A program made the translations under genes and the position numbers. Below the pieces are notes generated by a model. The model did not search any database. It saw only the letters and a list, made by a program, of their open reading frames with translations, and was not told the origin of the DNA. A stretch of 64,000 nt of DNA from Iphione sp. A-MEVVRFRX5 (lineage: Eukaryota), in the NCBI GenBank assembly GCA_976226885.1, contig OZ320313.1:160208001-160272000 (forward strand), in the 5' to 3' direction. Shown in pieces: positions 177-29,443 of this stretch; the stretch's first letter is position 1, and each line of letters opens with the position of its first letter.

Positions 177-3100
177 ACATATATTGGAGACATCCTCGTA
201 GCAGTCAATCCCTACAGACAGTTGGGCATCTATGACAAAGCTGTAAGTATATTAGAAATCCTTCCATGATATGTGACTCCAATCATGATTCATTTTAAGG
301 ACAAAAAAGTCGCAATGAGCTGGCATATTTCTTCATTAGCTTAATTGTTTTCTTCCTCATATCCGGATAGATGTTTACCATTTCCATAGGGCCTACTTGT
401 ATATATGTGCATGCGCGTAATGAAATTAAGAATATCATTAAAATGGCAGTTAAAGTGTATGGAAGCCGTTTTTTGAATCCTTTGATGATATCCAACATAA
501 CCGTTCTGCATGTGAATATAACTAACATTTTCACTTTCTTGTGGTGATGCGAAACACTGTTATATTTAGCGTCAAATATATATATATATATACATGTGAA
601 TACGTGTGTCTGTTTGTGTGTGTGTCAACGTCTTGATTCCGGTGCAAAAAAAAGCAGTAGGTCTCCCTCAGAATGTCCCGACCTAATTTTCACGGGGACA
701 GTTGTAGCTTCGAGCCTGTTCAACATGGTGTATCTCCCATGTATGACACTTCAACATCCTGTTTACTCTGATCATGGTAGGATATTATATGTTACAAATG
801 ATTAGTTATAAGGTTTATCTAATTTGCCTTCAGATACATCTGGATATTGTCGTGTATGAATGGTTATTGTTACATTGTGACGACACCGAAAGAACTGGAA
901 GGCCGACCAGAAATTGATTCAAAATTAGTGTAAATACAATCAAATCATAGGAACGTTAAGCATGTTTTCTGTGAATATTACTATATCCACAGACGCCATA
1001 TTTCAGTGCGTCTGGCCGCATATACCACAAGCATGCACCCTTGGATCACTGTATCAGCTACAACAAACTCTCACCGCCCTTCTGCACTCATCCTCATTCC
1101 CCTCTCACTCTCCCACTTACAAACCTACAAATACAGTCATGAGTATCTTTTACACTTTTAGATGCAAATAATCAGGCACACTAGTCATTTACACATTCCG
1201 CCTCTTATAAGACAATATAGAAACATGTCACATGGTCAAAGGCGAAGCTTGGTCAAGCCACCACCTGGCTTGGTTATGAAGCATCCTGATGGCAGTATTC
1301 AACAAAACCCTTCTTGGCCTCCCAACCTATAGACATAGTCACTAGTGTTAGTTGCCAAAGTAGATTAACTACTTCTCATCGTTTTTTAAGCCATCTTGCC
1401 TCGTCCTAGCACCGGATGACAACTTTTTCTTTCTTTATTTCCTCATTTTCCTTTCCTTGACGTTACGCATCAGAGCACTGGATAACATCCGAGTAGAGCA
1501 CATTCATTTTTTCTTCCATAGGACGATTTCTTTCGGAATATCTGTAAATTCTGTGACAGTTCTCATACACTTATGTCAAAAAATCTTTAACGAAATTCTG
1601 AGAGAAGGTAGAGTCAACCTAAGATAGAATGAACCCACCATACAGACGTCTACGAACAACGGATTTTTCACATGGCTTTCTCATTTAAACTATACGTACT
1701 TATTTCTAGGCATTTTTTCAACTTCCTGAGAACCAAATTCAAATTATTTAAGCATTCTACTGCAGATATTTTATCACTATTTTCGGGGTTGAGACCAGGC
1801 CCATTTAGAGTTGATCGGTCAGCGGGCAAAATGCTCTCCACTATGTCAGCCTAGTGCAGTATGGGCCAGTCTTGTGCCCTGACTGGTTGTATGCCATGGA
1901 TTTAGATAGGCCTGGAAGGGGGGCTTTACTGGGTGTTCATGGTGGTTTTGGAGAAGCACACGCCTCTACGCAGTGTTCGTGGTGGGTTTACATGTTGCAG
2001 CAAGTGGTGAAATAGCCACTGGATGACCATAGGAGGCTGTTAATATCCCTAATAGCAGGTGACAGCTGTTGTGTGAGTGCGTGTGTGTACACTGTGGACA
2101 TCATGTATAAAATATATTTATGTGCATCCTATTTGAATAAAAGAAATGCACAATCTGCACAGTAATGGTTCAGCTTCAAGATATTTTACACAGAATTGCA
2201 TAATTTACACAGTTCTGGTTCAGTTCATGAAATTTATACCAAGAAGAGCAAAGACTTTACACAGTTATGGCTGTTTCAAGAAATGTCCATAAAGAACATA
2301 CATATATGTATATATGCATATGTGTATGTGTGTGTATGTGTGGTCAGCTGCTACCCTGACCTCCACAATGCAGCTCATAGCTGCATCTCCCACTAGTACC
2401 ATTATTTAAGGGAAATGTCAATGTCAGTTGCAATACCTGGAACCGTGGAAAGAATTTGCCTTTATGTATTTAAAATGTACACATATATGAGCCTGATCTA
2501 TGTACATGTATATAAATTAAATGACATCACTTGAAACCTTGCCACAGAAACACTCACACCTACGTCTCATGTTGCTACATGGTTTTTGTATGCATGTACA
2601 ATCTTCTGGACATCTTCTGGATATACTCTCGTTTCTTAACGCTGTCTATTGGGCATCAGTTTTATGAACCAGCTCCTCTCGACACGTTCAAAGCGTTGTT
2701 TCTGTGATAGATCTTACGTGTTGAACACTTTTTCAGTCAAATAATTTGGAGATACATAAACATGCAGACCCCTTTTGGAGACGCGCTGGACATACAAATG
2801 CTTATATCAAATCAAATCATCAAATCTGAACTAACACGTGTACGAGAACTGTGACGAGGAAATGGCAAGGCTCTAACACATATGAAGTAGACGTGCATTT
2901 TGTTGGTGTGAAATGTATCACAATTATTTGAAATATATATATTTATACATATCACAGTGTAAATGCAGACAGACGAGCGCTATTCAATTTTGCAGCATAG
3001 TTCATCGGTATATTCTTATCTCTACTTCTTTAGAATTAATGTTCCTAATCTGGAACATATTTGTTTTCATTTTATACAGAAAAAGGAATAACCCTCCTTC

Positions 3101-6100
3101 GTTCTCTGGTCTTTAAAATATACTACACTCTATCGAAAGAATAGTAAAACATAAGTATTTATGTACTAGGTCAATTCCTTACCCATTTCCTGTACTTTCG
3201 TAACTATAATGTATCTCTGCAAATTAATCGTGTAAGAAGTACGAGATGGTATGGAACAAGGCAGGGATGAAGTAGTCCCTTCCGTTTGGTTTTAATCCAG
3301 TTAAAATAATTGTACAACATGGCGTTGAATTTACAGGAATCGAGCTTCCAGAGTTTAGTGGAGTGAACGTAGAGAATGTCACATCATGTAATCCCAAGTA
3401 AACTTCTTACTATCAAAATCAAAAGGTTCAGGTGTTCATACCTGATCTGATAACGATCTTCTGCAACGAGGCGAGGTCCGTCTAACGCTTCTAACAGATA
3501 GGCTGTATCTTAAGAATGTTTGTAATAAGAAATCATGTAAGACCCCCTAGGCAGAGTATAGGAACCACAATAGCTCAAAAAACCCACACCGCAATCATTC
3601 TAGTATCAGGTCACACAGATGTGGAACAGGTTAAACATTACAACAGCCTTGAAGTACTTAAACACCCCCGGGATATCAGCTTGATAAAGTCTAATACCTG
3701 GTGTTGTAATCTAAAATGTACAGCATAATTATACATATCTGGTTGAGCATAACAACTCCCTTTCTTTCTTGTTTTAAGTTCGCTGAAAGACGTTTCGGTA
3801 AAACATTGATAAATGAATAGATATTGCAAATCGCAAAGAAATATTGTGGGAATTTAAGTAAAGCAATTACATATGTATGTGTTCTTTTTCATATACATAA
3901 ACATGATCCCTTTTGGAGACGCGCTGGACATACAAATACTTATATCGAATCAAATCATCAAATCTGAACTAACACGTGTACGAGAACTGTGACGAGCGTA
4001 CAACCCAGTGTTTTCTTTCTAGCACTCGGATCAGTACAATGGCACCTCCCGCTCAAGCCAACCACCACACATCTTCGCCGTTGCTGATGCGGCTTACCAG
4101 CGGATGCGAGGAGTCACCAGTATCCCCAGGGATCAGTGCGTCCTTATTAGGTAAGGGGGATTCAACGTCGTCGAACACACACAAAGACAAAATATCCTGA
4201 GATTTACACAAATGAAAATAGTCTAAAATTCACACGACACTATGTCCCCCTTTCCGATGGTTACGCGACATTTGGCTTTACTGGCCATTATCAATAACAC
4301 GATGAAAACGTCTGCAAGACGAATTATGATGTAACCTTGTCATTTATGATAACGTTTATAAAATACGAGTATATATATAATGCGTCATTATATCTATTTC
4401 TCTGCATGTATATGGCTCATCGTCGAACCATTTTCAAAGGTCCTATTCTTAACATTTTTTAAATGAGTAGTCGGGCAATCTTCGCAGCAGATTCCCAGTC
4501 TTATAGGTATTATACTATTTTGTAAATCACATGCATATTTTTACATTCTCCGCCTCATTAGCATTTAATTATTCTGCTTTGTCTTGGTTTGTTAGTCGCC
4601 CTGTGCATCCTTGATTGATAATGTGGATTTTGCGTGAATGTTGCTTGGATAAGGGGAGAAAAAGGCAAGAGATTACCCGACTGTTCTTCTCATTTGCCAG
4701 TGGTGAATCTGGTGCCGGAAAGACGGAAAGTACGAAGTTGATTATTCGACAACTCATCGAACTCTGCAAAGGCAACACCTACATTGAGCAGCAGATCCTC
4801 CAGGTACGTGCATGCCGAAAAGGGTCAGCCGATCGTAAAAAATTCCTTCGCCATTCGCCATACTTCGGTTCTAATTGGGAAAATAGATTTTCCTCTACAG
4901 TAGGACTTCCCCTTGTGGACACCTCTGGGATAAGGACACCTCCCAAATGTGGACGATTTGGAGAAGAACCAACATGTTTCCTATAGTTAAGCAATGTAAG
5001 AGGACCTCCCTAATCAGGACACCCATTTTAGAAGAGCTTCTCCCTGTGGACACCCTCAAAGGGTAGAGCTTTAAGCCTGTGTACATGTTTTTGTGTGAAT
5101 TTGCACCTTAAAATGTGAATTTACACCTTGAAATCAGTCTAAACCCACCTATTTGCAGTTCAAACCCCCACAAGACCCCCCACCCACCCCCATTTGCAGT
5201 CTAAACCTGTGAATTAGCGGTCTATACCCACCGGGGGTGTCAACAGCGACCTTTCTGATGTCTCTCACACCTTGAAATCAGCACTTTTTTGAGCCTTATA
5301 AATTTTGAGGGACAAGAAATAATTGCATTTGCATTTAAATTATTCCACTTATGTATGTTAGTGGGTCTCTACATCGTGTAGTTCCTTTACATCCCCCAAC
5401 CCACCGACATATATGGGTAATTTTACACTTATACACATAACACAATCTTAGCCTTTCCAAATGTGTGCACGGTATCCTTCAGATCCAATGACTGTCCACA
5501 TTTCCACATTTAACTGTATTTCCTGACGATGAATGATTATGGGAAGACCGGGTAGAAAAGTACTTATCGTCGCGGTTTGTTATTATCATTCGTTAGATAA
5601 TTAGGACGTAGGAATGAGTCCCCTTCTGTGTACGTTTCCTTATATATGTATTTCCAAATGACCTCATAATTCAGTAGGCGATTTCCGTCCGCCTTGGCTG
5701 TATTCTAAACCCGACGTCAGTCAGCATGGTATCGATAGCCTTCTCGCTTAGCACGGGGTGATTCAGCCTAGGCGTTTGAAAAGGAGTGGCAGCTCTGGAC
5801 CACAGAAGAACCGTACACACATCGCATACAAATTTACATCATGCAGCTTCCTATTCACTGAGATAGGACCCACAAATATTGTTTATGTACTTTTCGACGT
5901 ATGTTGTTAGGTCCCAGTTGTAGGAGGAAATCAATAAAAGACGAAAACAATTGGCAAACGAAAACGGCAGTACTGAGAAAATTTGTCGTTTTAATCAAGC
6001 ATACGAAACTTAAATCTGGCCATGCCTGTGATATACAGCGGTCTGTCTATCACCGACATTTTTGGATCCTGATGATGCCGTCAGTTATGTGGGAATTATC

Positions 6101-9100
6101 GGTTGTGGAATTTTATTTGTCGTGAACTACACGTTCTCTTTCCTCAGTAATTAGTGGATAAAATAGTATTGTTCGTTATCCGGTTGTCAGTTATTTGGGA
6201 ACTACGTATATATTAACTTATATATAATTTAAATGAACAAAGAATATGTTGGCTGAATTGGAAGAGGTAACTAAATACTAGTTAAATAAATTAGTGGAAT
6301 AAATCCAATCTGAAATGCAATAATTTCTTTTGTGAGATTTTACTAGGAGAGTTAGCGAAAAGTTATACCTTGTAGTGTCTATGAAAGCTTGGGTACTGGA
6401 ACGTTCGGCCACGTTGCAAAACCAATGTATCCACATCAGAAGTTAAATATGTCGGAACTATATCCTTGGAGGGTTCTCATCCTAATTTATGTATGATCAG
6501 TACTGTTGAAGATAATATTCTGGAATTTTTTTGCTACACCATGTACTGCGCTCACCCTGCTGCCCTTTAATGTTGATAATAAAACTGCGTAGCAAACTTA
6601 TAATTATTTTATATTTCTGGCCATAGTTACCATTGAACAATGTTAGTTTGGAGACCTCTCCTTGACAGTGTTTTCTCACAAATACCCCATTCGCGTTTTT
6701 ACAGTGCAATCCCATACTCGAAGCTTTTGGGAATGCCCAGACATCTATGAACGACAACTCAAGTCGATTTGGACGATATATCCAACTCCGGTTTAAAAAC
6801 GGCCAAGGTGTGTTGAAAACTGCATCCAATGTAATCAGGAATATATTTTCTGTAGTCACTGTTGCCCCCACCGATCGCTTGCCTTTGAATTTAGACAAAT
6901 ATATTTAACCGATCGTGGTAATCTAGAGGTACCTTTCTGAGAAAGTGAACAAGGTAGCAATTTTAGCGGTATCCTGTATGGCTGTTTTCTCTCTCGCCAA
7001 ATGAAAAAAGCACGTGCTCTTATCTAGATCAACTATTGCTATACTTGGAAGGTCGTGCTACTTGCGTTTTTAAGAGCTGGCTAAATAGTCGCTTCAGTGA
7101 ATCGATATTCAGGGAATCGACATTCAATGTGTTTTGCACAGTTATAGACTCCCTTGTCTGATACCTGTAAAGAAAATTGCCAAAGTACGAATCGCCCTTC
7201 AAAAAAAGCCCTCAAAACAGTTAGCTCGATATTGTTCTTCGTCTTGGAAACGAAGGTCATCGGAATAATTTCTTTGAAAAACATGTTTGTATTCGTAGTA
7301 TAGAATAATGGAATTTTGTATCGTGTACGACTATTCGAGCAAAACCGCGAAAGGAATAATTTGAGTGTATTTATTCGCATTCCCGACTTTGCTTTTTGTT
7401 CTTTTCGGTTTGCTGAATTGAAGTAATGGGAACGAAAATTAATGAATACCTGCTGGAGAAGTCTAGGCTCGTAACACAGGGCCGCGGGGAGCAGAACTTT
7501 CATATCTTCTACTACATGTTTGCTGGGCTGCCCGAGGAGATTCAGCAAACTTACTGCCTAGATGATCCTTCAAAGTACAGGTAAATACACCCCCTGAAAA
7601 TCAACTCCTGCAAATGTTCGAGATCTCAGAAAAATCACAACAACGAGGTTAAGATTTGACAAAGACTTAGCACTGACGTCCATCTTGTTCTGTGCCTTAC
7701 TCTTTTCAATGACGGAAGTTATATGGGGCACTATATGCTTCGTACTATTAAACGATCCTCATTTTATATCGGGATTCATTTTTTCAGTTACCTGAGTGAC
7801 GGTCTTGGAGTACTGAAGACGGATAAGGAGGGTTTAGTGCAGAAATATGAGGAGCTGATAAATGCCCTCGACATTGTCGGATTCTCAGATACAGTATGTT
7901 TTTTTCATTACAAGTGTACATTGTAATAATTGAATCCGAAGGCATATCTGTGTTTCCAGTAGCCAGACTGACCCTTCATTGTGGCCGGTGTAACTTTGTG
8001 TTGCTTTGTATATACATGTATCTTGAGATGACTGGTCGTATGATACCAGGTCCATTAGGATCTATGCAGTAGAGGTGACATCACCATATACATTTGTTGC
8101 TTTTAGTATCACTTAACACTAAATAAATGAAAACTAAAAAGTCACCGACTGACCAACCCTATCATTTTTAACGTGATCGGAAACACAGATATATAAGCCT
8201 AATTATTCACCCGTGCAACAATTTCTTTGATGGCTCGTGTTGTTAATCTTATGTTTGTCACGATTAAACATCCTATGCCTTTCCCATAAATATAAAAGAG
8301 AATAAGCATTCTCTGAAGTTTCTGGCAAGTCCTCAAAAATCCATTGGATACTGTATCAGATGTATTCTATTTTTCATTTCAATGGGCGTGCTGTAAAAAT
8401 CACATTAAACTAGTTGGTATTTTGGACATAGTTAATGCAAAAAGAAAAGGATATATATCGAAACAACGTTCATCTACAAATAACGGTCGCCTTTCGCTCT
8501 TGGCATGATGCCCGTTGGCATGGTGTGTGGCCATTGTAGCTCTAATTATGGCTGCAAAATTGTAACACTTACCTACAATTTACCTAGGAGCAAAACGACA
8601 TGTTCACCGTCCTCTCCGGAGCCCTCAACATTGGTAACATCGAGATTCATAGCAATGACAAAGACGAGGCGGTCTTGGCAAATCCTGGATCGGCCAACAC
8701 AGTAGCGGTAAGTACAACGTATTAAGCATGCAGTCGAATCTCCGCAATAGAACCACTTTCCTAAGGTGAGAAACAGAGACAGACAGAGATGGTCAGGCAC
8801 AGAAAGAGACAGGTAGGCAGATAGTAAGCAAGACAAACACATTTTAATGTGCGACCAGGTGTATGAAGTGGAATGGTAATACATTCTGTTTTCCCGACCC
8901 CCCAATATCTGACAAGTACTGTGGATCGGAGAGGATTGTGGTGTCAACCAAAGTAAAACCCTAGATTTTAGGTGCCCAGTGCCCAGCTCCCTAGTTATCC
9001 TTCAACATCTACATAGTCCTCGTGTCCGCAAATAGGGTCTATCTTACTGAAGTGAATGGCTCATACCTTTTTCCTAACAAAAGTAATTTAAAACAATACT

Positions 9101-12100
9101 ACCCACACTAGAGGCACCACCGATTTCTGACTTTTCCTCTTAATAGGACTATGTTGCCAGAAAACACAGTCCAAAGTTTTAGGGGAAAAAATCAGATTAA
9201 TGACTGCATGCACCCTTCAGATGAAACGACATAAATTACATCTGGTCTGCGCTGGTGACAAAAACCTCAGTGATTGTTGTCTTAATAGCAGTCATTTCTG
9301 TAGTAGCGAATCCGGGGACGATTCCAATAAAGTCTGGTTTACCCTTGCAGTCTACGTGTAAGAAAGTGCCCAGAGGGGATGCATAGATCATGTCATGATC
9401 CACACTTCAAAATACATTGTTAAATTGATGTGTTATTCTTATTAACCTAGGTGTTTGTGTTAAAAAAACATGATGTCTGTCAACTTACATTTAACCTTTT
9501 CTGAAGTTATCGATCGCCATACATGTATTTTTTCTACCTTTGCTACCCTATCTCATTCTCTTTATCTTATACGTAAATTATTCTGCTTATCATTTGCGTT
9601 GTTCCCTTTCTGTATGTCTAAACATGTAGGAGAATCTGTGAAATATACGTTAATATCAACTAGAAAATATTGGCTTCATCGAGATATTAATGGAAAACAA
9701 TTGTGAAAGAGTGTAGTAACTATATTATCATGCCCCGTGTATGAGTGCCTTATCATTGTGTATATTCATATTACATGTAGTTTCAGGTACCTACTGGTAA
9801 TAGCAGAGAAATGAACTAGACAATTCTGCGGGTGCGAACTGTAATTCTGTATGAACAGGTGAAATACCAGAGCAGTATGTATCAGCAAATTAATAAACAC
9901 GGGTGAACATTTTCGTCTTCAACTAATTCAATCTTTCAATCGTTTGTAGAAGCTCATTGGCCTTGACGCTGCCGAGTTAAGAGGTCTGCTAACGTCTTCT
10001 GTGACCTTTGTCAAAGGTCAAGAAATTAAGAGAAACTACACGGTTGCTCAAGGTCTTGGTAAGTAACTTTCTGCGGCTCAAAACCTAAGGCCTGAGTATA
10101 CTTAAAAACCATGATTTTAGGCCTTAAGGTTCACTATCCATGCAAACGTTTTGGCTCACTGACCCATGGTTAAGGTCATATTTCTATGTATCTGTGAAGT
10201 GTGTAGGCGTTACCATGGCGTTGATGCCGTGTAAAGTCCATCATATTACATCTCTGTAGAAAACCATAGTTCACATTCCAAACACACATACACAGGCATG
10301 AGAGCACAGTGGAATGGGACACGCTCCATTCCAAAAACAACCTTCACAGAGACATGCAATATGCTACATGTTACATATGTACATAGATACTCTTCTGCTG
10401 TTATTCTGTGTTCAAAAACATTCTAAAATCACGTTGCCATGGTAGATGCAGACATATGTCCATTGATATTAAGCCTTTTTCCTGGAAATGAGCCATGGTC
10501 TGTGTAAAAGTCCGGAAGGAAGAATGACCCACGCTCATTCTTTCACTTGCCACCGGCCCACCAATGGGCCTAGTACCGCAAGCAGTACAATGTATTCCCC
10601 TGTGGACACAGAAGGTGTGGAAGCGATCGTGTTAGATGGTTTCATTTCAGACATATTCAAACTAGGTTTATATTATGCAGAATTCACCCATTTTTTTCTG
10701 AAATCTGTACATAATAGACACGTGTTATGCAGAAGCCACCCCTTCTTGTAAATAGTCAGCCCTAGTTAACCAAACAATCTATCTTTTTTCCAAACTATTT
10801 GGTCAACCAGAGGTTTCCGATAAATCATAGAATAGAGGGAAAATACCACGTTTTATGGATTAAAATGGTTGATATAACTAGGGAAATCAGTCATATGGGA
10901 TTTAGTTAGCTGATGATGACTCTATATATGCTTCATATCTATGTTGTGCAGTGCAGAAAGAACCATTTACATGTTATATTATCAGAATGCAAGTTTGAAG
11001 CAGATTACCTACTGGCCTTAGATATAAATGGCACTACCACATCCAGATATGATGTCAATGCTTCTTCTCCCGTCTTTAGATTCACGAGATGCCATCGCCA
11101 AGGCAGTGTATGGACGCCTCTTTGGCTGGATCATTAACAAGGTCAACCAGCTGCTTGCTCCAACAGAGATGCTTACTAAAGAGCAGACCCAGGAGATTGA
11201 TATTCTGGATATTTTTGGATTTGAGAAATTCGACAACAATGGCTTTGAGCAGGCATGCATCAACTTGGCCAACGAGCAGTTACAATTTTTCTTTAACAAG
11301 GTACAACCTGTTTACATAGATATATACTTTATATACATGTACATATATTTAGTTTTGAAATGAGACACACACAGTACTTGTTTATTGCTGCCCTAAAAAC
11401 GGCATTATTTTGGCTCAATCCATTTTAAGAGATATTCTTCGACCAATTATGAAGCCACCAATTATTATAGAGTGAGACTACAGTTAAACGTAGAACAGGC
11501 ACCCCATGCTGGTTTTCTTCCTCTCCTAATGAATAGAACACAGGGCAAATAGTTGACTTCTATTTCAAAGGTACTGCTTATATTTTCATTTCTGAAAATG
11601 AACACCGTTATGTGTTATTTCATACATTAAATCAGTCACCTATATGAACGGGGTCTGTTGAACAAAGGGATTCGTAAATATAGAGCAAAGTAAGTGGCTA
11701 ACCATACATGAATAAATGCACAACATTTTCCATATCTCATGAAAAGAACATGTCATATTATATGTTAGCATGCCTCGATTGAGGAGACCGGGATTCAAAT
11801 ATATTTGAACATGTACATTGATTCCAATACCCATACAAACCTCCTATCCAAACAGAATCACCTTAGACGGACTCTGTTCAGATGTCCAGAGTGCATTATA
11901 TGAACAAAAGATGGAATAAAATCTTCGCGACAACATGACCTTGAAACCAAATATGTTCCAATATGCGTGCTCCGTAATGTGTGAATGCGTCATTTCTTAT
12001 AGCATATTTTCCTGCTTGAACAAGAAGAATACCAGAGAGAAGGTGTCGATTGGCGAGAGATCAAATTCGTTGACAATAAGGACATTCTGGACTTGTTCCT

Positions 12101-15100
12101 CGGGCGCCCGATCGGAATTCTCAGTCTTCTGGACGAAGAGAGTCAATTCCCCAATGTAATTAGCACATTTTCGCATATTTCTTATGTGGGATTTTTAAAA
12201 AAAAAGTTCTATACACACGATTAGAGAAATGAAACTTTAATACATGTATATACCAACCCCCCGTAGACAAATATGCATCTTTGATCTTACAACGTTCAAG
12301 ACAAACTACACCCCCCGTCGCACCATGTCATGTAAAGAATACAAAGTTATTTCCTGTATTTTTTTTATCCAATGGCTAGGTTTTATCTATCTCACTCTAT
12401 CTTTCCCAGGGCACCGATTTGTCATTCGTAGAAAAAGTGACGAATAAATTTGACGATCATCCTAACTATGTCAAGTCACCTCACAGTGGTGTAGGAGTGT
12501 TCACCATCAAACACTACGCCGGAGACGTAAGCGGGCTTTGCATCCTATCTGTTACTTCCTGGGTCAATGCTATTTATATTGCAGTGGGATCAGTCCGTAC
12601 GTGTGCTAAGGAAGATCCTCTTACTTTTGCAACTATGTGTAGCGGCGACAAATGGGACTTATTGTGTACGAATGTAGGTCAGAATAAAAGGTTTAATACA
12701 AATCGGACTTGAATAATACTATGTGCAATGTTAGACATTGAGAGAAACAGCACCGGAGGAGAGGCTTAGTGCTTTCTTAAAGGTAAAATTACTGTCCAGT
12801 ATTCCTTAAAATGATTTGCTGTGTCAATTTTAAAAGTGCAACTTCCCTGCGGCTTTATCGCTACAACCGTGTTCCAATTCTGCAGATAGTGATTGCAACT
12901 TTTTCACATTTCAGATTAAGTACACAATCGACGGGTGGTTGGAGAAGAATAGAGACACAGTACCTCCTGGCGTTATGGAGATGCTTCAGCAGAGCAAGAA
13001 TGAGTTATTAGGCCTCATCTTCCGAGGTAAGAATTCAGGAAGGCCTCCTGCGGAGGCAGTGACAGGGCCATCTGTCATTCGTTCCCTCAAAAAGTCTCAG
13101 TCGTCAAGCGCATATTCAATCAACTCAGAGAAACACTTAAAAAGTTACTTTTCTACCCAATCTTTCACTGTAAGACTGATACGATTTCACGACGTATACG
13201 TACATCCACTGTACATATACATTTATACTGAAGTTACGTTTGTGACTCTCCTGGCCAAAGTAATTTTGATTTTTCCGTCCATTCCCTAAATCCTCCAAAT
13301 TGATTCCATCATGTGGAGTCGAAATGGCAAAATAAAAAGCTTGACTCAGAATATGCTCCTGTGGTGATAAAAACCCCTATAATCGTTCATAGGAAGGGTG
13401 ACACGTACTGGAACGCTTGCTCTACAAGGAGTGGGTGCCCGAGAAACAAAACGAGTGGTAAGCAACATTTGGCAATATAGCATTCAAGTTTATTGTCTAA
13501 GTTTGCTAACGGTTGATTTATATGTGCAATACTCATAACACTGTACATTCACATCCGTCTTATGAACTACTGCTGCTTTCCTTCGGTAGGCCAGAAATGC
13601 TGCCACGAGTGCTAAGGAGAGAAAGATGACCGTCAGTACTCAATTCAAGGTGAGGGACAAAAGACACATTTGTGATTCCCAAAATGGGGCAGGGAGGCTG
13701 AAACCGAGGTACCTATGTAATATGTAGCTGATTAAGTGAGCATTTTGAATATAAATACTTAGTCTATGCAGCACTCTCTTACGGTACTCCTCTGTTTGTA
13801 TATAGAACTCGCTACAAGTGCTGATGGAGCGAATGACCTCGGCTGAGCCCATCTTCATCCGTTGTATTAAACCCAATAACCAAAAGTCGGCCGGCGTCTT
13901 CATCGATGACTTCGTTCAAGCACAGGTAAGTCTTCCTCAAACAATGTGTACAGCCATTTTGCTTGTATCTATGTCAAAACGTAACCCACTGATATTCTAT
14001 CCGTGGCATCTGTAATTGGCATATTTACATTAGCTAAACTTTCATATGTCAGCCTTATGGCGCCAAGTCCTTCTTGGCAGGCTTTGTCCTCTTTAGTCAT
14101 AGGCTGTGTACTGTAGAGTGAGTCTATACTAGAGTACAACACAATGCAGGAAGTAGGGTCACTCGGTGCAGTTCGGTGGCACCACTGAGGCCACCTGAGT
14201 TTGATACACGGTAGCTAGAGAAAGGGCAACAGAGTGCACATCAGTGGCATTACCTAGGCCACTGCACCAGCGGTAATACTGAATAAGGTTATATCACCAG
14301 CATCACCTATTTTAGTATTGAAACAATGTATTCAAACTGCTAATCTATGATTGGCTGGTAGATAGGTCAGTGGCACCACTTCAGGCTTAGTTACACTGTA
14401 TTTATGTTAGTGGTTCCCCATTAGTTAAAAACATTTTATCGAGTGTGTGTATAGTTACTAAGTATACATTTGATTCCATACTGGAATCTGATTGGTTGCA
14501 CCTGGACTGGTAATCTGGCAGCTACTCAACTAGAAATATAGGCCCTGTGTGGCCAACAAACAGACTTAAAACTAGGACTGATTGTAGAACTGCTTTATTG
14601 AACCCACTTACAAATCACAATACCGGCATGGAAGGTCCATCTCAGAGATCAGAGTCCTTGAATCAGCAGACTAGAGTTCACAGCTCTCACCTGTCTCCAT
14701 GAGCCTGGAGCACAGCATGTCTGGTTCCATGCTGGCAAACTCTCATTCTTCTTTTAGCCTGAAGCATTATCATGCTGGCCGACAGCTCAGTGTAGAATAT
14801 TAAGAGGTTTGGTTTAAGCAACCACTGTCGAAAATATTCTGCGGGTATAGAGCATAGCCTGTTTATGCACTGCGCCTCTCATACTGATCATGCCCCTGGA
14901 GTTTTGAGAAAATACCACTTTGATATGTAGGCTCAGGCCTGTAGCGAAGCATTTTTGTTGGGGGTATCTGAAATTAGAGAGGTCACTCCTGTTCACCAGG
15001 TTTTTTTATTCTGTTGGTTGACCCCATGGCCTTAGTGGGGGGTATTGGGCATTACACGAATGAAGTCACGTTGCCTATCACAGTAGATGCACAAAGTAGT

Positions 15101-18100
15101 CGAAGTTATTTATACTATTGGGAGAGAAACTGATTCGTATACATGCACTTTGTACTTTTCATTTTGAAAGTTTTCTAGGTGGCTGTATTGAACCGATGGC
15201 ATAATTTTGTTTCAGCTGTTGTACACAGGAATGTTAGAAACAACGAAAATCCGAAGGGAAGGATTTGCTGTCAGGCCGTCCTTCGAGGAATTCGTGAACA
15301 AGTATGTTTTTTTCCGAATCAACTGATCATTATGAGTTAGAATGGTAATAAAATTCCAATATGCTTTTAACTTTCCGGTCATTAATTGTATACGATTTCA
15401 ACAAATGTTTCCTACTAAATGTAACATGAATAGACGAGTAAGCCACAAACCCAATCAAGATTACCCCGTGGTGTAAAGAGTGCGTACAAAAGCATGAGCA
15501 TATTTTTGTATGTACAGTACACGGGTACTTGTGGCGCCAAGTCCTCCTTCTTTTCCACCATGCAAAGTTAATGCACACATTTCCAGAATTACTCTTTTCC
15601 TGCCAAAATAAGACAAAAAATACCGGATACACTTTTAGTAAGGATTCCACATATGCTCCATTATGTCTCTACATGTATATCCTAGCAATAAAGTGCTAGC
15701 TCAAACCTATAATTTGCATCAATGCCCCCCCTCCTCACCGTCATGTTAAAGGCAGGGCATGCATGGTAAAAAGGTTTTGAAATACTCCCCTTTAACAGAT
15801 ATCTGGTTTCAGAAATATACTGACTTTCTTTGGATCGAAATGACGCACTGGGACATATTAAAAACTATTATAGGCAGAAAAAAATAAATTTAGCAGGTGA
15901 TCGTAATCTGCCATGATTTGTGATAGTTATCTTGGTAGTAACAAACTTTCGTTCGTCATGAATGTTCACCGTTTATCGGATAAGCAAAGTAAAACAGCTA
16001 AGATGATAGCTGAATATCTACTGCCTGGTTAAAAATTAAGGGGTAAGCATTTTCCCCAAAGCCTGTATTGTGTTGATGTAGGCGAGCACGTTTTCCCTAA
16101 GCATGAGAGTCAGCCTCCCAAACACCCGTGTAGTCCTGTTCACCACATACAGGCGAGTGGTCAGAAACACACAATATATAAAGGAGAACCGCAGCTTATC
16201 GATGTTTCATCGAACTGTCTGTAGCAATCTTATTCTGTTTTTAGATTCAAGGTAATTGCCCGGAGACTGTCAATGCCTGCAAACTCTGACTCCTGTCGTG
16301 CAATTCTAACTGCCAGTAAGCTGTCTGGATGGCACATAGGGTAAGTTTAAGCCATTAAGGGATCAGACAGGGATCAGATTACGCTACTAATGGGCAAGTG
16401 TGTCTGGCAGGATATCCTCCCAAAGGGCGAGAAGTATTACATAATTATACTATTTCAATGCATGTTACATAAAAAAGGCATGAATGATTATGAGTTTCTG
16501 TCTTTTATAGTGAATATTGAAATCATTATAATTGTATGATATTTTTTGTGGTACAAGCCACAAAAAGGTATAATTCGTCCTACCTATGGTAATGCCTCTT
16601 GGCATCACTCACCTCCATTGGGTTTAACGAATTGTTAATACACTACATGTACTTAGTTGCTGATCCCTAGCGAAGCACTGATCTATAGTTTCTCAGGATA
16701 TATTCCTTGTTTGTATATGAGAGTCTTCACATAATAATAACACAAATACACCAGGTAGCTTATATATGAATGTTGTCTTTTCAATAGGAAAACAAAAGTG
16801 TTCCTAAAGTACTGGCATCTGGAAAAGCTTGGAGAACTTCTAGAAGAATTAGGAAAACTAGTGATTCGTATTCAGAAAGGTATGTAAGCTTACACGATGT
16901 TCTGTCTCTAAATTCCTGTCGATAATCCTGGGAAATTGGAGTGGATACCATCCTTGTTCTTTTATCTGTTAGCATGTTAGCAATTCTCTCTCTGCCTTTT
17001 ATCCCATTCAGGGCTGGATTAGGTATGAGGTAATTGCCTTACAGGACGAGGATATCTGGTTAGATATCCTTCTGAAGAGTGAGGGACATTATTAAATGAT
17101 GGTATTTCAAAGCCTGCTACATAAAAGGTATACAAATTAGAATCACTTCTTGGCATTGCTCATAGAAAATGGCATAATAATAGCTATTTTAGACGTATTC
17201 TTTAATGAAAATTCTAGGAATACTGCAAAACTATACCCTGGTCCATGATGCCTGAAGGCATCCCTACCAAGGATTATGAGACCACATCTGGATTATAGCA
17301 CAGTATTTCTGGGACACCAACCAGAAAAGAAAATTAGATAGGCTTGAAAGGTTACAAAACAGAGTATTATCAATCATATACAAAGCAGGGAGCAAAACAA
17401 GTTCCTACAAATTGATGGTTAATTTACACTGTATCTATAACATCGAAAGCACTCAAAGAAGGATGTACTGTTTCCAGCTGTGCACCATCAACTGTATGGT
17501 TAAGAACAAACTACTTCCTATGAAACCTGTCCTATCCACAAGAAATGCTGCTAGCCCGCTAGTTCTTTTATGTAAACCAAAGAGTAATAAGGTAAAAAAT
17601 CAATACGTCATTCAGGTATAAAAACTGGAATGATGTAGATATAAATATAAAACGCCCTATGCGGGGCGAGGATCGGAATAAAATTCTTTTCAATTCAATT
17701 CAGTCAATTCAATCCTTCACCCTTTACATGGGAATGCCTTCAGGAATTCCCTCAAGTATCATCCGCCCTTATAGGGCTAAGCAGTTTATTTATATTCCCC
17801 CAAATAACACTTACACTGGGTTATATTTATCGCCTCCCTCAAGGAGACATTTAGTTCACTTACATGTGAAAAGGATGATATGTATAATGAAAGAATTATA
17901 TTCATGCATCAGATTAGAAAAATTGTACTGGCCTGTATTAAAATTATATCTGTTGATTGGCCTTGATTCGCTGCAGTTGTTCGAGGTTATCTCGCCAGAA
18001 GGCGGGTATATCATCTCCGCAAAGAAATAGCCCGACAAAAGGCAGAGGAGGAGAGGAGGCTCCGAGAATCCCGCAGCCTGCCTCCAGTACCACAAGTCGT

Positions 18101-21100
18101 GCCATCTGCTCCAGTGCCCGCAGAACTACCGGTGGGTTCAGTCCCTGTAAAATCTGAGCTGATAAGTAAAGTCGAGGAGCAATTTGATGTTTGCAAACTA
18201 AAACTGTTTAATGCAACATTCAAGATACTATCTAAATCTGTCTATTTTATTCATTGTGGTTGTGTAGCAGGAGGTGGACCATGCCCAATACGTTTGTATT
18301 TCCATTTTAGGTCGCTTATAATCAAGTTGCAGATGATGCGAATAATGCTCAAATACTGTGTTTCATCTAGCTCCAGTTGACATTAAAATGTGACTTCTAT
18401 ACACTAAAGGCTATGCTTTGGTGATAATATTTCTCTATGTCGAGGACTGTGGCTTATACATGAAGCCAGACGTATTAAAAGATTTTCTCTGTACAACATA
18501 GAAGCATTCTTCTTAATACACTGTCTGTTATGGAATACCATCTGAAGGTCAACAGTATCAGTACACTAGCACTACAGGAGACCTGGCTAAATGGGAAAAT
18601 AAGACATTTACTGTATTGATGGCAATGTCTGTCTAAGATTGGATAGAAATATTAAGAATTCAGTAATAATAATCTATGCAGTCTTTAGGCCAAAAAGAAA
18701 TATGTGTGTTTCTGGTAATGACCATGCAAAAAGCTAGGTAGTGAGGGAGGTATCTTTTTTTTTTTTTTTTTAGATTTTTTCCAGTTTCTTCCTCCAGTTT
18801 TAAATAATAAAAAAGACAAGATCAAGAATTTTGACCAATCTGTATGAGTTTTACAGTTTTTTAGTGAATTTCCATGGATTTTATTGTTTTTCTACTGAAT
18901 TTACAAAAAAAACATGTGTCATGAAAACACATATCTAAGGAAATTCAGCCTTGGGAATTCTTTGGGGCCAAAAACTTTTAGGTAGGGTGGTTTTGCTAGG
19001 TAGGCATGGGTTACCAGAAACACACCTATCTTGGGGGGGGGGGCCTTAATATCTGTAGAAACAAGATTACTTGTGCTGTTAACTGGTGGTTTCAGATCAT
19101 CAAGTTAAATGGAAAGAGAAAAAACGAAATGAAAATAATGTTTTCCCCACCAGAAACTCCAAAATTACTAATGAAGACTCTATTCATGCTAAATTGAAAC
19201 TATTTGGTTCTATGAGAAAGTGGTCTCCCCCCACCCTCCCTGTTATCTGGTCTCTAACCAGGAGTCCACTGTACCATAGAAATTTTATTCAATCTAATAT
19301 CAAAACTGCTAAAGGATGCATATGAAAAAAAAATTAGAATCTAAGAAGTAACACCGCTTATACTGGAATTTATACAAATTGCTTTGAGTGAGAAACAAAA
19401 TACGTGTACATGTAGTACGAAAGGTATTGCTATGGAAATACATGGATCTCAGTTTTAACCTGATAAAATACTATATATATTGAACAATCATGTGAATGTT
19501 TGCAGTTATATATTATTACCTACTCTCAATATGATTATGCTGAAATGAAAAAAATACCTTCTATTAGAAAAACCTACAACTTAGTTTTTGGAGACCTTTA
19601 AAAGGCGTTGATATGGTGAACGATCAATGAATTCTATTTTGCTATGAAGGCTTTAGACCGGTTCTCTATCTATCTTAATCACAAACATCAATTGTTTGCT
19701 GTAAACAATATGAACTCTAGCTAATATTTGTTGCTGGCATAGTGAAGGGACTGGCATAGCGAAAGACACATTGTATGTACAGACCGTTGTTTCGGGATAC
19801 ATGAATATCAACTCCACTGTTTCTTATTATGACAGAATGATTTCGACAAATGTTAAAATATCGACCATTTCTGATTCTCTATTTATCCTCAGACATATGC
19901 AACACAGTTACCGCAAAACCCACACGACGATGGGGACAATTTCGACATGGTGAAGGTCAACAAACCCTCTAAGCCCGACTCCAGGAAGATGTCACTTCGC
20001 TGGTTCCAGGAGACACAGCTGCCACAGCTTCAGGAGGCACCTGGCCAGTTTGCCGAATGGTTCCATGGCATCATCACACGCAAGTAAGCTGCTAATGAAA
20101 CTCTCTTAATGGATCAACATATTCGGCAAATGCAGCAAAAGAAAAACCAGTATATATTATATAAGTAGATGTCCTGGAATTAAGACCGAGGTATTATACA
20201 AGCGAACAACGGTGCTGGACTGTAGTAACCAGTATACATGTGCATGTACATGTCTTCTAGAGAGAAGACCTGGGACATATATACATGTATATTATATTCA
20301 ATGAATTATATGTGTTATGTCCCCCGCCCCTCTAAAAAAATATGTTCCATTTTTGCAAATGGACATCTCCACGTTATGTGATGCATAGAAACTGAGGGGG
20401 TATCACCTACACTTGATATGAAACTGGCGGACGTCAGCCCCCATTCCTACTTTCCTGATAAGATTGAGACTTTCTGTAAAACATAACTAGGGTGCATACT
20501 CCATGCTTGATTCGTGATTCTGAGACCAGTCCCTTCCTTGCAGGGAAGCTGAACGCCTTCTCAAACATCAGTCTATGGGTTGTTTCCTCATCCGTGTTAG
20601 TGAGAGCCGTTTTGGATACTCACTCTCTTTCAAGTAAGTCGCCTAATAGAAACAGCCTACGCCTGCACGTGCTATAAACAAAAAAAAAAGGTTTCAATAG
20701 GATGGAACACTCATTATTGTCTTTAAAATACAGGATGAATTCAGTTTTAGAACACGGACTGTAGTATGGTTCATATCGTAATGAATGTCAGCAAGGATGC
20801 TTAGTAAAGGGACACTGCTCAGACCCAGTTAGAGTACAATTTGGTGTTCCACAGGGGTCTACTCTAAAGGGACACTGCTCAGACCCAGTTAGAGTACAAT
20901 TTGGTGTTCCAAAGGGGTCTACTCTACGCGTTTAAATTTCCATTCCAGACATGATATGACGTTTCATGTCAATGAGGAAGGCATCTTATGTGATGCATTT
21001 CTGATCGTCTATGATAAAAAATTAGTCTAGCCATCTGGCATCAGCCCTGTACTGGAATATATACTACAGTAACCATGTCAGAGGCAACATGCAAAAGAAA

Positions 21101-24100
21101 AGAACACAGACTTTCAGGTACTATTAATTTCTGATCTTAAGTTTTATTTTTTGCCAATACCAAGCCCGTACTGGCACCAGAGGTAAACCTTAACAAATTG
21201 CCAGTACTGGACTAGGACTGGTGTAACTTTACTGTTCGTGTAGTATATATTCCAGTACAGGGCTGATGATAGACCTGCACTGCACCTGTACAGCACTGTG
21301 AGTACTGGGCCATTAGGCACCCAATGTGCATTTCAGTACTGGCCTGGTACTGATAGCCTGTACTGGACTGTTATCTTAAACTGTACTGGTCCAGCACAGG
21401 TCTATTACAGTCATGGTTACCTGGAAATCAATTGCCTATATAATGTCCATACTTTGGCTGTTTATATTTACCTACATAACATTGGCACAATTCTTAGCAT
21501 ATTCTTCACATCACTTACCTCTCTATTGACACTACCTATTAAAAATGTCTCCTAAAAGTAGTCCGTCCCCAGTGAAGTCTCATGGGGTGTGTGAGATTTG
21601 TGTGGGACTTCTTTGTTTTTGCATATTTGCTATACAAAAAGTTACTTTTTCTTAAAAATGGACAATATAATTGCTTCATACAGTTTAGTATTCAGCATAT
21701 ACAAAAATGTGTAGGATGAACTGCACTACTTGTTCTGTTAGTGTAAGGATATTGTCCTACTTTGCTTTGAGTTTCTATGTCATCCATACACATCTGTTGT
21801 TATGCAATAGACTGCCCAACTGTTTAGAACCAGTGCAGATGCTCAAGGCGCTTGTTAACATAAAACCTAATGGACTATTCTCCTCACATCAGAGGTTGCA
21901 TCGGGAGGTGACCTAGTTATGCACTGCCCCAACATTCCAGTGACAGTCTGCACTGACAGCTACCTAAAACACTGATTTTACACTGCTGCCATTTTGATAG
22001 TTATGCACAGAAATCATTCATATCTGGACTGAATGATCTTTGATACCTTAGGTATACAAATGCTGAAGCATTTCTTCCTACTTTTCATAGTTTTTTTCAT
22101 AATGGCTTAAGAGAGATCACCCTCTATCTGCAGTTTACTAGACCTGCTATGTGACTGTCATTTTCAGAACTAGGGCTTTCTCGCTCTGCATGCTGATTGG
22201 CTATGACTGGGTCACTGGTTAAAGATGGGTCATTGTAATGGGCAGAGGCAAAGAGTCCATTATCTGCTGTGGGGGAAACATTTCTTTACAATCAGCTAGA
22301 TCTCTTAACCTTAGAAATGGCATCACTATTGTGAGGTCGTGGGAAAAAAAAACAGCACATGCAGTATTACCTGGACTTTTATAGCATTCGAGACTCGATA
22401 TGGCAGGTTCTATAGCTTTCTGCATGGTTTTGCACCTCCGTATCTCCCCGCTTCCCCTGAAATGGTGAGAGCTCATTCTGTGCGTAAACTTGCAGTGTCT
22501 AATAGTAATGTAAGATACAAATTTGTATCGATGATTATGTTTTATGTACGAGGAGGAGGGATCTATATTGATAAATTCTAAAATTTTCCAGGGAAAAACC
22601 AACCTCATGGCTGTCCTGACTACCTCAGTTTTATATATGGTCGTGATATTTTATGAAGTATTTTATTCCAGCCTCGTGCTGGGATAAATTGAGGTTACTG
22701 ACCTCTAGTGGGGGGTATGGTAAACAAGTGTGTACCAACACTGTCACCATGAGAAAGAAAATAGTTTCACATACAATAAATAGGACATTTAAATAAATGT
22801 CAAGGCTGGAATAAAGACAAAACCTGTACCTATGGTGAGCTGGGGATGAAGCAAATACTTGTCCAGGCAGCATTATCATACCAAACTCGGCCTTCCTCCC
22901 TCTTTTGGTATGCATGCTACCTGAACTCGTATTTTTGCTTCATCCAAGCACACCATACCTGTTTTGTCTAAGAATCATATGAATCACTATCAAATAATAG
23001 CTATTGTCACTACATATATTTGAGGTTTTGAGGCATTCCAAGTATGGGGACTCTGAAGTAGCTAGCCCTGACCGTGTAAATATTAGGCAACAAACGCCTG
23101 ACTAAATATGTATCAACTAAAATAGATTCAAGCTTAATCTACAGTGTCTTAATCTACTTAATCTACCCTTGCCACGTCAGCACAGTTTTAATCTGGTAAC
23201 GTGATTCAACCAACAGAGCTGAGGACAGGTGTCGCCACTATATGATTGACCAGACACCTAGCGGCAAGTACGTTATCGTTGGCGAGCCTCGTGTGCACCG
23301 ATCTCTCAATGAACTGATCCAGTACTACCGACGAGTGAGTGATCAAGTTGCTCATATAGATTCCTAGATGGCTTAGTGGAGCCGACCTTTCGACAAACAA
23401 AACTTCCCTTGTGCCGTCCAGTCTTACTAATTAGATTTTCTTTCCATTAAATTCCATCCGAAATGGTCTAATCTCTCCAAATTTCTATGAACAAAAATCC
23501 AGTCAAGCTCTATCTGCCAATGTTTTGTTTCAATGAAAAAACGAATATACAACAATGCTTTCTGCTTATCCATTTAAATGAAATATGCCCATATTTTGGT
23601 CAGCTCACCAAACACACTCCCTGCAGTGCTATAAGATAGCAATATCATGACCAACATTTCAGAACTAAGGATTCCAGATCATCTTGGAATCTTGTATTTT
23701 CTCTAAATGAAAGCAGCTGGACATTACCAAATACATACTTGTACAATGATATCCATGTGTGTTTGTGATACAGTGCGTCAAAATATGGCTATTAAAGGTG
23801 ACTGCTTTGGTCAATCTTAGCAAATTGTTCCTTCGGTATGTAATCGTGATGTGTTTAATGCCTTGTTTAATGCAGACGGCCCTGTCAAACTGGGCCCACA
23901 CACTGGGTTCACCTTGTGGTCAGGAAGAGGGGCAGTGTGATTACTGGGATCTGCTCAACGAGGAGAACCGCCAGCTCCTGCAAGTATGTATGATTTATTT
24001 TTTTTACAGGACATCTTATAGAAAGATTGCCTCGAGACGTATCTTATTTTTTTAAAAAAACCAAGGTTCAGATCCCAAGGCATCTTCATTGTCTGCAAAC

Positions 24101-27100: not shown

Positions 27101-29443
27101 GGCCCTAGGCCACTATTTGAAATCCGAATTTTCCCAAATCCGAACGATTTCGGCCAAAACGGCGATCGTTCGGATCTGGAGTATTGACTCTGCCTCCCTT
27201 GGACTACCCGTTCTGGGTCCGCCTCTGATGTGTGTGTTACGTTTCCACTTTTTATGTTCAGAGCAACTTAATAAAACTGACCAGCACCTTACAAATGTAC
27301 TTTGAACTAAAATGGTTGCATGTAGTGCCGTATTAAACACGCACATGCATATGGTTGTGTTAACCCTAAATCTACTCATACACTGATATGAATATACATG
27401 TACTTATACAGTTACTCATGGAACTTTGTCTTACGATATATAACTGTCGGTTTTGAAGTTTAGGTCTAGTTTTCGAAGGAAATCACATGCGCCTATATTT
27501 CTCATCAATCTTACACCTTCGCTACCGATGTGTATGTAATATACTTAAGTAATTTGCATCACAGCTGATGTAATCAGTTTAACCTGTTATTCTGTCATTT
27601 CCACTTTTTCCTTTCTTCTCTTACTGTAGACTCTAGTTTTGAAGCTTTTGTCAATCCAATCCCTTAAGCTATTCTCATAGCAAGGCGGAGAAATGTGCTT
27701 TTTTGGCTTTTTCTGGGATGAAAATTAGATAGTACTTTTACAATCACTAGCGGCGTGTGGTGGGGAATGAGATGATAGGATGATTCTGCTTGCGCATGGC
27801 TTTCCTTGCCTCATCTGTCCTTCCCCGCTTCTCTTCCCGCACCTGCCAGCGACTGGAGACGCTGATGGCCCCCGCCCCAGGGCCACCCCCTCCAGGAGCC
27901 CATCCTCCGGGAGTGGACTTGCCCCCGCCTCTGCCCCGGCGAAACAAGCCTCACCCAAAGGATAGTCCAGTTGCAGGGAGACCACTGCCAAACCCTTTGC
28001 AAAATCAAGACAAGGTGATAGAAAACATAATATTTTATGCCTACTTGGTCAAATGCACTATCCACCGGGAAAATTGTCGAACAAGACAAAAACGAAGCTC
28101 TGCATTTCAAATGACACACCAGAACTACTAATACGTACATCTACACGTACAGGTATCAGACAGCTACGGTGCCACAGGATATTCTACATGAAAAACTAAT
28201 GAACAAGGCTGACTTAGAAACATCCTTTTTCTGAGAGGCACTGTCCGACCAGTCACAGTGAGAACTCCTATGTTCATAGGCCTATAAACACCATATTTCT
28301 ATATTCTCATTTTGAATGGTTATCGCTCTGACCTCTTTTGGCAAAAGCAGCAGCATTTCTTCCACGTAAGTCCTTTTTCAACAGACCCGAAGTTGACGAA
28401 TGGAAATTTATTGTTCAGTCAATATAATATATTATGTGATGAATTCTTCATGTCCTACACATCAGTTAAAAGACTTATAATTGGCAGAACTGAAATTGTA
28501 GGAATGTACAGTTTTGTATGCTTATCTTAAAAGGTACATGTGTAATACTTTTACCGACAATTTTCAAGGAATTATACGGTAGGGTTCTGAAGATAGAGTT
28601 TTAAATCATGGTGAAATCATCACTAACTTGTGAGACTCTTCCACACCGTGCTCAGCAATATACAATAATTACATGTATTGACAAGTGTATGGAAATTGTC
28701 ATTAGGATGGCTGAGTGTTAAAAGAACCACATCAAGAGGTTGAATTATCCAAGTCTTTTCTCTGTTCAACAATGAAGGGATAATTTGGTGATAAATTATA
28801 AAACATGTACATGTTCTGCATTTACCCAAAAGATCAATGTTGTGCATTTCATCTCATTTCCTTTTTCCTTTTTTGTCAACCTCCAAAGAATAATTCACTG
28901 TTTATATACATGTGCCGTGCGTAACCTGTGCACAGAATACACTGTAGACAAAGTCTTTCCTGTCTCGATGACTTGAACAGCTTTTTTATATAACGATACA
29001 GAAGTAATATAATATGTAAAAAGTGCTCTCCTGGATAGGAAATAATTAAGTCTCTGTTTTCTTCGTTCACACACGACGTAGATTTCCATTTTTAGTCAAA
29101 ATAACCACGTTTCTTTCACACAGACTTCTATTTTTGTACCGATGTATGAGCCTGTATTTCGTGTTTGTGACTACTAACTCGTATGCATACAATGCGCTTT
29201 TTCTTCACCCCACGCTTCAATGTTTTGCCTATGCATTTTATAAACAAAGCTTCATCCCAATTTGCAATTTGGACACAGGTTCGGCAGATGTTTAACTACC
29301 CCTTTACTTTCATGTCCTCTCCATTATTATTACAGAGCCGGAACCAAGATAGTCTCCTGAATAAAGCGGCCCTGGACAGACGGGTTAAACTGTCTACAAC
29401 TCGTCAACGAACACTGAAAGCTCCGCATGGTCCATCCAATTGA
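177..29443 (+). CDS. Unconventional myosin of the MYO3/MYO16/MYO28 group with SH2-containing tail (class-28-like), 5'-partial
   Basis: Hand-assembled exons, all GT-AG and phase-consistent: 177-242, 4023-4150, 4701-4803, 6705-6807, 7424-7580, 7788-7893, 8588-8707, 9950-10058, 11080-11300, 12003-12155, 12410-12526, 12915-13026, 13393-13457, 13590-13649, 13806-13925, 15216-15301, 16245-16340, 16788-16879, 17977-18131, 19893-20083, 20544-20633, 23217-23334, 23876-23983, 25531-25587, 26216-26287, 27850-28014, 29336-29443 (3078 nt, stop TGA). Motifs: [83 protein letters not shown]. The last four exons have no homology support and are less certain. Confidence 0.93.
2752..3996 (+). repeat. Direct repeat of about 105 bp (2752-2858 and 3893-3996)
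   Basis: Both copies read atacataaacatg...ccttttggagacgcgctggacatacaaat...caaatctgaactaacacgtgtacgagaactgtgacgag. Confidence 0.9.
4898..5062. mobile_element. Partial MITE with TA-CAGTAG end and internal GGACACC repeats
   Basis: Starts ta-cagtaggacttcccttgtggacacc and has several ggacac(c) units. The right TIR is not clearly preserved. Confidence 0.35.
5694..5825 (+). mobile_element. Possible SINE body fragment
   Basis: GGTATCGATAGCCTTCTCGCTTAGCAC resembles the conserved central segment of invertebrate SINEs (recalled from memory). No intact tRNA head is seen. Confidence 0.3.
16861..18008 (+). other. Single IQ motif split across two exons
   Basis: Spliced translation [16 protein letters not shown] matches IQxxxRGxxxR. 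Confidence 0.85.
20805..20926. repeat. Tandem duplication, 60 bp x2
   Basis: taaagggacactgctcagacccagttagagtacaatttggtgttcc(a/c)...ggggtctactc repeated with one mismatch. Confidence 0.9.
21039..21268. repeat. Perfect 28-bp inverted repeat (foldback/MITE-like)
   Basis: catcagccctgtactggaatatatacta (21039-21066) pairs with tagtatatattccagtacagggctgatg (21241-21268). Many extra CCAGTAC/GTACTGG units continue to about 21400. Confidence 0.8.
26727..27180. repeat. About 32-bp degenerate minisatellite flanked by direct repeats
   Basis: Units such as ttggcaattttcggacgattttgcctaaattt, about 6-7 copies over 26846-27060. Flanks aaccgaatttcccaaatccaaac (26751-26774) and aatccgaattttcccaaatccgaac (27121-27145). 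Confidence 0.75.
27850..28014 (+). other. Proline-rich tail exon of the myosin
   Basis: Pyrimidine-rich acceptor ...cttcccgcacctgccag, phase 0. Translation [55 protein letters not shown]. The donor GTGATA is weak. Confidence 0.7.

Follow-up and report, generated by a model that had tools for sequence, protein, structure and literature searches.

A 64,000-nucleotide stretch of animal genomic DNA (contig OZ320313.1, positions 160,208,001 to 160,272,000; hereafter the window) encoded on its plus strand a myosin with an SH2 domain in its tail. Sequence comparison indicated that the gene is most probably an ortholog of the metazoan SH2-tailed myosins of class XXVIII, which are called 'myosin-IIIb-like' in automatic annotation. 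As such, it is an ordinary ortholog of an already described class that is annotated in well over 100 animal species. Twenty-four exons at positions 177–29443 (window coordinates are used throughout) joined in phase, with GT-AG at every border and zero internal stops, into a model of 1008 codons with its stop codon at 29441–29443. In order, the model encoded a myosin motor, one IQ motif, a short charged and proline-containing linker and an SH2 domain, followed by a PCGQ..CDY motif and then a proline-rich tail. The G+C content of the window was approximately 40%, and it contained N gaps at 36106–36369 and 59693–59862.

For every junction, donor–acceptor pairs were enumerated and scored against full-length relatives, and ambiguous junctions were inspected by hand. 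Collinear stop-free pieces of the plus strand between 63 and 15323 covered positions 22–635 of the Pfam Myosin_head profile in increasing order. The Pfam SH2 profile (77 positions) was covered from 9 to 41 by the piece at 20524–20634 (E 7e-6) and from 41 to 77 by the piece at 23200–23364 (E 1.3e-5). The junctions around and within the SH2 exons had canonical sites: 18131/19893 combined a GTGGGT donor with an acceptor consisting of a pyrimidine run and CAG (phase 0), 20083/20544 had the donor GTAAGC (phase 2) and 23334/23876 the donor GTGAGT (phase 0). An earlier note on this DNA had described exons joining in phase from the converter through the IQ motif and the SH2 domain to a proline-rich tail; the sites and phases bore this out, and the full 24-exon model was open. 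The least certain border of the model was the loop 2 donor at 13169. A direct splice from a donor at 13026 to 13819 had a good splice-signal score but was rejected, since it loses the conserved VSTQFK-NSLQ segment and homology continues to approximately 13172.

The exons of two gastropod genes, from Gigantopelta aegis and Pomacea canaliculata, were mapped with an exact-match block finder (tblastn missed many short exons), and the introns of both were projected onto the window model. Approximately 20 of the 23 window introns coincided with gastropod introns within one or two residues, including the IQ intron, two introns inside the SH2 domain, one at its end and two in the tail. Five introns present in both gastropod genes were absent here (model residues ~338, 400, 499, 521 and 898). 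Gastropod exon 1 comprised residues 1–37 (intron 37/38), and the start of the next exon was the start of the first exon in the window. An exon 1 of about 37 residues is predicted to lie upstream of the window, because the 918-residue core of the model aligned from residue 38 of an Owenia protein (residues 38–975, 54% identity in a single-stretch alignment); the gene would then have at least 25 exons. Proteins of approximately 1050–1100 amino acids with motor and SH2, from hosts ranging from sponges to birds, matched the model over its whole length.

The ATPase motifs of the motor were all in place, with GESGAGKT in the P-loop, NDNSSRFG in switch I and DIFGFE in switch II. The IQ consensus IQxxxRGxxxR was found with a regular expression at model residue 695. 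This motif is split by the intron 16879/17977, and Pfam on the half-motif alone gave a weak match (E 0.88). The IQ motif was followed by a charged stretch of approximately 25 residues, which could be a single stable helix, and then by the proline linker. From IQ to SH2, the linker measured approximately 107 residues compared with approximately 170 in relatives, and was thus about 60 residues shorter.

The SH2 domain was complete over three exons (19893–20083, 20544–20633 and 23217–23334). The three phosphotyrosine-pocket residues pointed out earlier, Arg alphaA2 (GIITRK), Arg betaB5 (FLIRVS) and His betaD4 (CRHYM), were all present and were near-invariant among relatives: in 122 aligned SH2 regions of the family, Arg alphaA2 was kept in 122, Arg betaB5 in 120 (with two gaps) and His betaD4 in 117. 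The RWFxETQ and PCGQ..CDY motifs flanking the domain were likewise conserved in the family. When all stop-free segments of the window were searched with a profile of family tails, the PCGQ exon matched with an E value of 6e-7. The proline-rich exon was not significant alone (E ~3) and was assigned to the gene from its motif order, its phase and an intron position matching gastropod genes. As a sequence, the proline-rich tail is real; its 90 residues contained 22% proline and carried PPLPRR, which fits PxxPxR, and RPLP. PxxPxR was found in 47 of 99 family tails, and the basic STTR motif of the last exon was common to the tails of several lophotrochozoan homologs.

One motor exon (11073–11303) served as query against a set of 1.84 billion representative proteins. 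Its long best matches had Myosin_head from residue 9–24, SH2 approximately 170 residues past the motor and no kinase domain. A word search was then run with the closest full-length relative. The window's own protein was not among the matches of the protein searches, in which no match exceeded 54% identity. Nearly all of the 120 best relatives listed were 1000–1130 amino acids long and carried both PF00063 and PF00017, giving more than 100 proteins with motor and SH2. The hosts were sponges, cnidarians, molluscs, an annelid, a brachiopod, a bryozoan, echinoderms, hemichordates and amphioxus, and among vertebrates sharks, bony fishes, coelacanth, amphibians, alligator and birds. No mammal was among these 120 best relatives, which lends weak support to the statement of the earlier note that the group is absent from mammals. 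Contigs of 3.3–4.7 kb from several relatives bore uninterrupted open reading frames (ORFs) of approximately 1050–1075 amino acids; one contig of 4212 nucleotides had its ORF at 238–3444. Since these contigs are too short for introns, they were taken as transcript assemblies with motor and SH2 on one mRNA. Judged from them, the fusion is transcribed as a single mRNA in relatives.

The fused order in more than 100 species and on intron-free transcript contigs argues against two adjacent genes, in which a motor-IQ myosin would end at approximately 18131–18378 and a separate HSH2D-like SH2 adaptor would start from 19893. Vertebrates do have free-standing adaptors whose SH2 module closely resembles this one, and the join in this genome is predicted from DNA. 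Nevertheless, canonical and phase-compatible splice sites connect both parts, and the introns around the join match gastropod positions. Read-through past the donor at 18131 stayed open for 82 more codons, and an intron-retaining motor-only product is possible. The source-named non-myosin proteins matching the tail were all vertebrate, yet the motor groups with lophotrochozoans. The annotation of Elysia chlorotica also favours two genes, as it splits the locus into two adjacent partial models, EGW08_012009 (motor half) and EGW08_012010 (SH2 half), on one contig of 429,643 nucleotides. In the Candidula unifasciata assembly the gene is likewise annotated as partial models of a motor half and an SH2 half. 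These two-part gastropod models are probably split annotation, not true gene fission. Overall, we consider two adjacent genes very unlikely and treat the locus as one SH2-tailed myosin gene.

Sources call motor-SH2 relatives from a crinoid, an acorn worm, a newt, a hagfish, a sturgeon and a jellyfish 'myosin-IIIb-like'. In UniRef, many kinase-less relatives with motor and SH2 are called 'non-specific serine/threonine protein kinase', and a few relatives are named myosin-VIIa, -X or -Ia. The misnaming looks like propagation from class III names. That such genes are often mislabelled as myosin-III-like was thus confirmed, the kinase-less motor-SH2 relatives being mostly named 'myosin-IIIb-like'. 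In Sanderia malayensis, a predicted protein combined fucosyltransferase domains (PF17039, PF00852) with the second half of the motor, the IQ motif and the SH2 domain; here the gene models were most likely merged by mistake.

Class XXVIII myosins have a tail of an IQ motif, a short stretch of coiled coil and an SH2 domain, and the class was listed as metazoan-specific, with members in Nematostella, Xenopus, chicken (Gallus) and some fishes (Odronitz and Kollmar 2007, PMC2375034). The motor-IQ-SH2 order, which the earlier note had assigned to class 28, matches this definition. Like the class, the gene has one IQ motif and a C-terminal SH2 domain, is predicted to start its motor near the N-terminus and is metazoan; its charged stretch between IQ and SH2 may correspond to the coiled coil. 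It differs in its host, which is apparently lophotrochozoan, a group absent from the 2007 list, and in its shorter neck-to-SH2 linker.

A maximum-likelihood tree was computed by a quick method under LG+C20 from 56 motor domains, class III and class XVI sequences included. It placed the window motor within the 24-member clade of metazoan SH2 myosins (Shimodaira–Hasegawa-like approximate likelihood ratio test, SH-aLRT, 93), where it belonged to the lophotrochozoan part (91). The whole clade unites it with SH2-bearing proteins of vertebrates, echinoderms, cnidarians and sponges. A split with an SH-aLRT of 97 divided the SH2-myosin side from the kinase-bearing myosins (among them Danio myosin-IIIa and myosin-IIIb of the turtle Terrapene) and class XVI. 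The proteins named myosin-XVI-like, whose N-terminus is of the ankyrin type, formed a clade of their own (SH-aLRT 100) apart from the window, and membership in class XVI was rejected on this basis. [quoted passage not shown] (2014, PMC3942036). They share the myosin head and the C-terminal SH2 domain, and the SH-aLRT 97 split left the Salpingoeca kvevrii and Microstomoeca roanoka sequences together with the metazoan SH2 myosins on one side. However, these unicellular-holozoan proteins show lineage-specific expansions and varied architectures, whereas the window motor was in the metazoan clade.

In motor similarity, class III (MYO3A/MYO3B) came closest among the large named classes, with approximately 40–44% identity, and it shares its automatic names with the SH2 myosins. 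Unlike the gene described here, its members have an N-terminal kinase, several IQ motifs and no SH2 domain. We considered whether the gene could be a class III kinase-motor myosin with kinase exons upstream of the window and the SH2 domain as a lineage-specific tail. Relatives with the same tail began 9–24 residues ahead of the motor and had no Pkinase match, despite the 'myosin-IIIb-like' names and the UniRef kinase name on some of them, which favour this explanation. The 5' end of the gene lies outside the window, but gastropod exon 1 encodes only 37 residues and its intron corresponds to the first exon border in the window. As to an N-terminal kinase or ankyrin domain, homologs had only approximately 37 residues ahead of the equivalent exon border. 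The motor was split from the myosins that bear a kinase, Danio myosin-IIIa among them, and forcing it into the class III clade, a group named after the tree had been seen, lowered the log likelihood by 79.8 (approximately unbiased (AU) test, p-AU 0.0004). Class III membership was rejected, with the motor outside the Danio myosin-IIIa/Terrapene myosin-IIIb clade and the AU test against it, and a kinase-bearing class III gene is extremely unlikely. In the DNA and homologs covered here, neither outcome named in the earlier note as refuting its reading came up, be it transcripts ending before 19893 or an upstream kinase with the motor inside class III.

Several points weigh against the assignment to class XXVIII as a complete and functional gene. 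The tree was made with a quick method, the class III group of the AU test was chosen afterwards, and the tree holds no sequence labelled as class XXVIII by its authors. Exon 1 lies outside the window, and the predicted lack of an N-terminal domain follows from homology. The splice junctions are predictions from the DNA of this gene, and the two tail exons beyond 23983 were assigned by weak motif matches and agreement in intron position. Finally, the mechanism proposed below is read from the domains, in a class for which we found no functional study. With the gene known here from its DNA, an unexpressed or decaying copy of an SH2 myosin was also considered. Its branch was rather long (0.49 compared with a median of 0.34) and its neck linker falls short of the length seen in relatives, as a pseudogene might have it, but all 24 exons were free of stops and frameshifts, all borders were GT-AG, and the catalytic and pocket residues were intact. 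A pseudogene is highly unlikely, and an intact SH2-tailed myosin of class XXVIII is the preferred assignment.

Outside the myosins, the nearest SH2 domains, together with the post-domain motif, were those of HSH2D and SH2D2A (TSAd). For the Owenia SH2 module (residues 840–975), the closest solved structure was human HSH2D (2cs0, 94 bits), followed by SYK (78 bits), and the alignment with 2cs0 extended beyond the Pfam domain into an LTxPC(G/R)Q motif. When the Owenia tail was searched against short proteins only, fragments of the same myosin came first, followed by vertebrate HSH2D and SH2D2A with E values of 1e-37 to 1e-25. All source-named non-myosin matches were from vertebrates. HSH2D and SH2D2A differ in being motor-free vertebrate adaptors of 300–450 amino acids. 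Membership in this adaptor family was rejected; the SH2 module is alike, but in this gene it forms a myosin's tail. We tentatively suggest that the module of SH2, PCGQ..CDY and PxxP and that of HSH2D/SH2D2A may share one origin, the adaptors being a motor-less copy of the tail or the tail having been captured from an adaptor, although we hold this for the less probable case. A statement of such a common origin was not found in the literature on SH2 families, which was covered incompletely. If it is true, the known ligands of TSAd and HSH2D would predict the partners of the myosin.

Table 1. Exons of the SH2-tailed myosin gene model in the window. The sixteen motor exons from 4023 to 16879 share their evidence of Myosin_head matches, junction enumeration and GT-AG borders.
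Feature	Position	Strand	Evidence
Equivalent of exon 2 of gastropod genes	177–242	+	Acceptor/donor sites; aligns from homolog residue 38
Motor exon	4023–4150	+	Myosin_head, GT-AG
Motor exon, P-loop GESGAGKT	4701–4803	+	Myosin_head, GT-AG
Motor exon, switch I	6705–6807	+	Myosin_head, GT-AG
Motor exon	7424–7580	+	Myosin_head, GT-AG
Motor exon	7788–7893	+	Myosin_head, GT-AG
Motor exon	8588–8707	+	Myosin_head, GT-AG
Motor exon	9950–10058	+	Myosin_head, GT-AG
Motor exon, switch II DIFGFE	11080–11300	+	Myosin_head, GT-AG
Motor exon	12003–12155	+	Myosin_head, GT-AG
Motor exon	12410–12526	+	Myosin_head, GT-AG
Motor exon, loop 2	12915–13169	+	Myosin_head, GT-AG
Motor exon	13590–13649	+	Junction enumeration, GT-AG
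Motor exon	13806–13925	+	Junction enumeration, GT-AG
Motor exon	15216–15301	+	Junction enumeration, GT-AG
Motor exon	16245–16340	+	Junction enumeration, GT-AG
Converter end and first half of IQ	16788–16879	+	Junction enumeration, GT-AG
Second half of IQ (IQK/VVRGYLAR), charged stretch of ~25 residues, proline-rich linker	17977–18131	+	
Acidic stretch, RWFxETQ, SH2 start WFHGIITRK (Arg alphaA2)	19893–20083	+	Splice sites; homology from ~19935
SH2 exon 2 (Arg betaB5)	20544–20633	+	Pfam SH2, splice sites
SH2 exon 3 to domain end (His betaD4)	23217–23334	+	Pfam SH2
Post-SH2 exon, family motif PCGQxxGxCDYxxL	23876–23983	+	Family-tail profile, E 6e-7
Proline-rich tail exon, PPLPRR and GRPLP	27850–28014	+	Sites, phase, motifs; profile E ~3
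Last coding exon, ..KLSTTRQR.., stop 29441–29443	29336–29443	+	Acceptor; STTR motif

Intron 1 contained two copies of a dispersed repeat (2725–2928 and 3821–4084), approximately 1.1 kb apart, with near-identical translated strings followed by TNTCTRTVT. On the minus strand, a long simple repeat at 46646–47110 gave THSL/SLTH units in two overlapping ORFs and is low-complexity DNA, not a gene. Minus-strand ORF pieces at 43610–44062 and 40108–40518 had protein-like stretches, and a second gene on that strand may have exons there. Pfam gave no match for four long ORFs downstream of the myosin gene, these minus-strand pieces included.

From its domains, the protein would be an ATPase-competent motor without an N-terminal kinase or ankyrin domain. 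Its one-IQ lever should bind calmodulin or a light chain. The protein would be a short-necked motor, monomeric or weakly dimeric. The tail would act like an SH2/PxxP adaptor, in which the SH2 domain may attach the motor to tyrosine-phosphorylated partners and SH3 proteins may be recruited by the PxxP motifs. Tyrosine phosphorylation of a partner would then recruit or load the motor on actin, so that tyrosine-kinase signalling would place the motor. Phosphotyrosine-dependent cargo on actin, as suggested in the earlier note, is a reasonable functional reading of these domains. The class was described there as little studied, and in agreement with this, we found no functional or experimental studies of SH2-tailed (class XXVIII) myosins in the literature beyond the 2007 and 2014 surveys.

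With this gene, class XXVIII is documented in a lophotrochozoan-type genome, and its spread is much wider than first described. The labels 'myosin-IIIb-like' and 'serine/threonine protein kinase' have spread onto proteins that have no kinase domain. Zebrafish, Xenopus, chicken, Nematostella and molluscs keep the gene and are tractable for asking whether tyrosine-kinase signalling recruits an actin motor.

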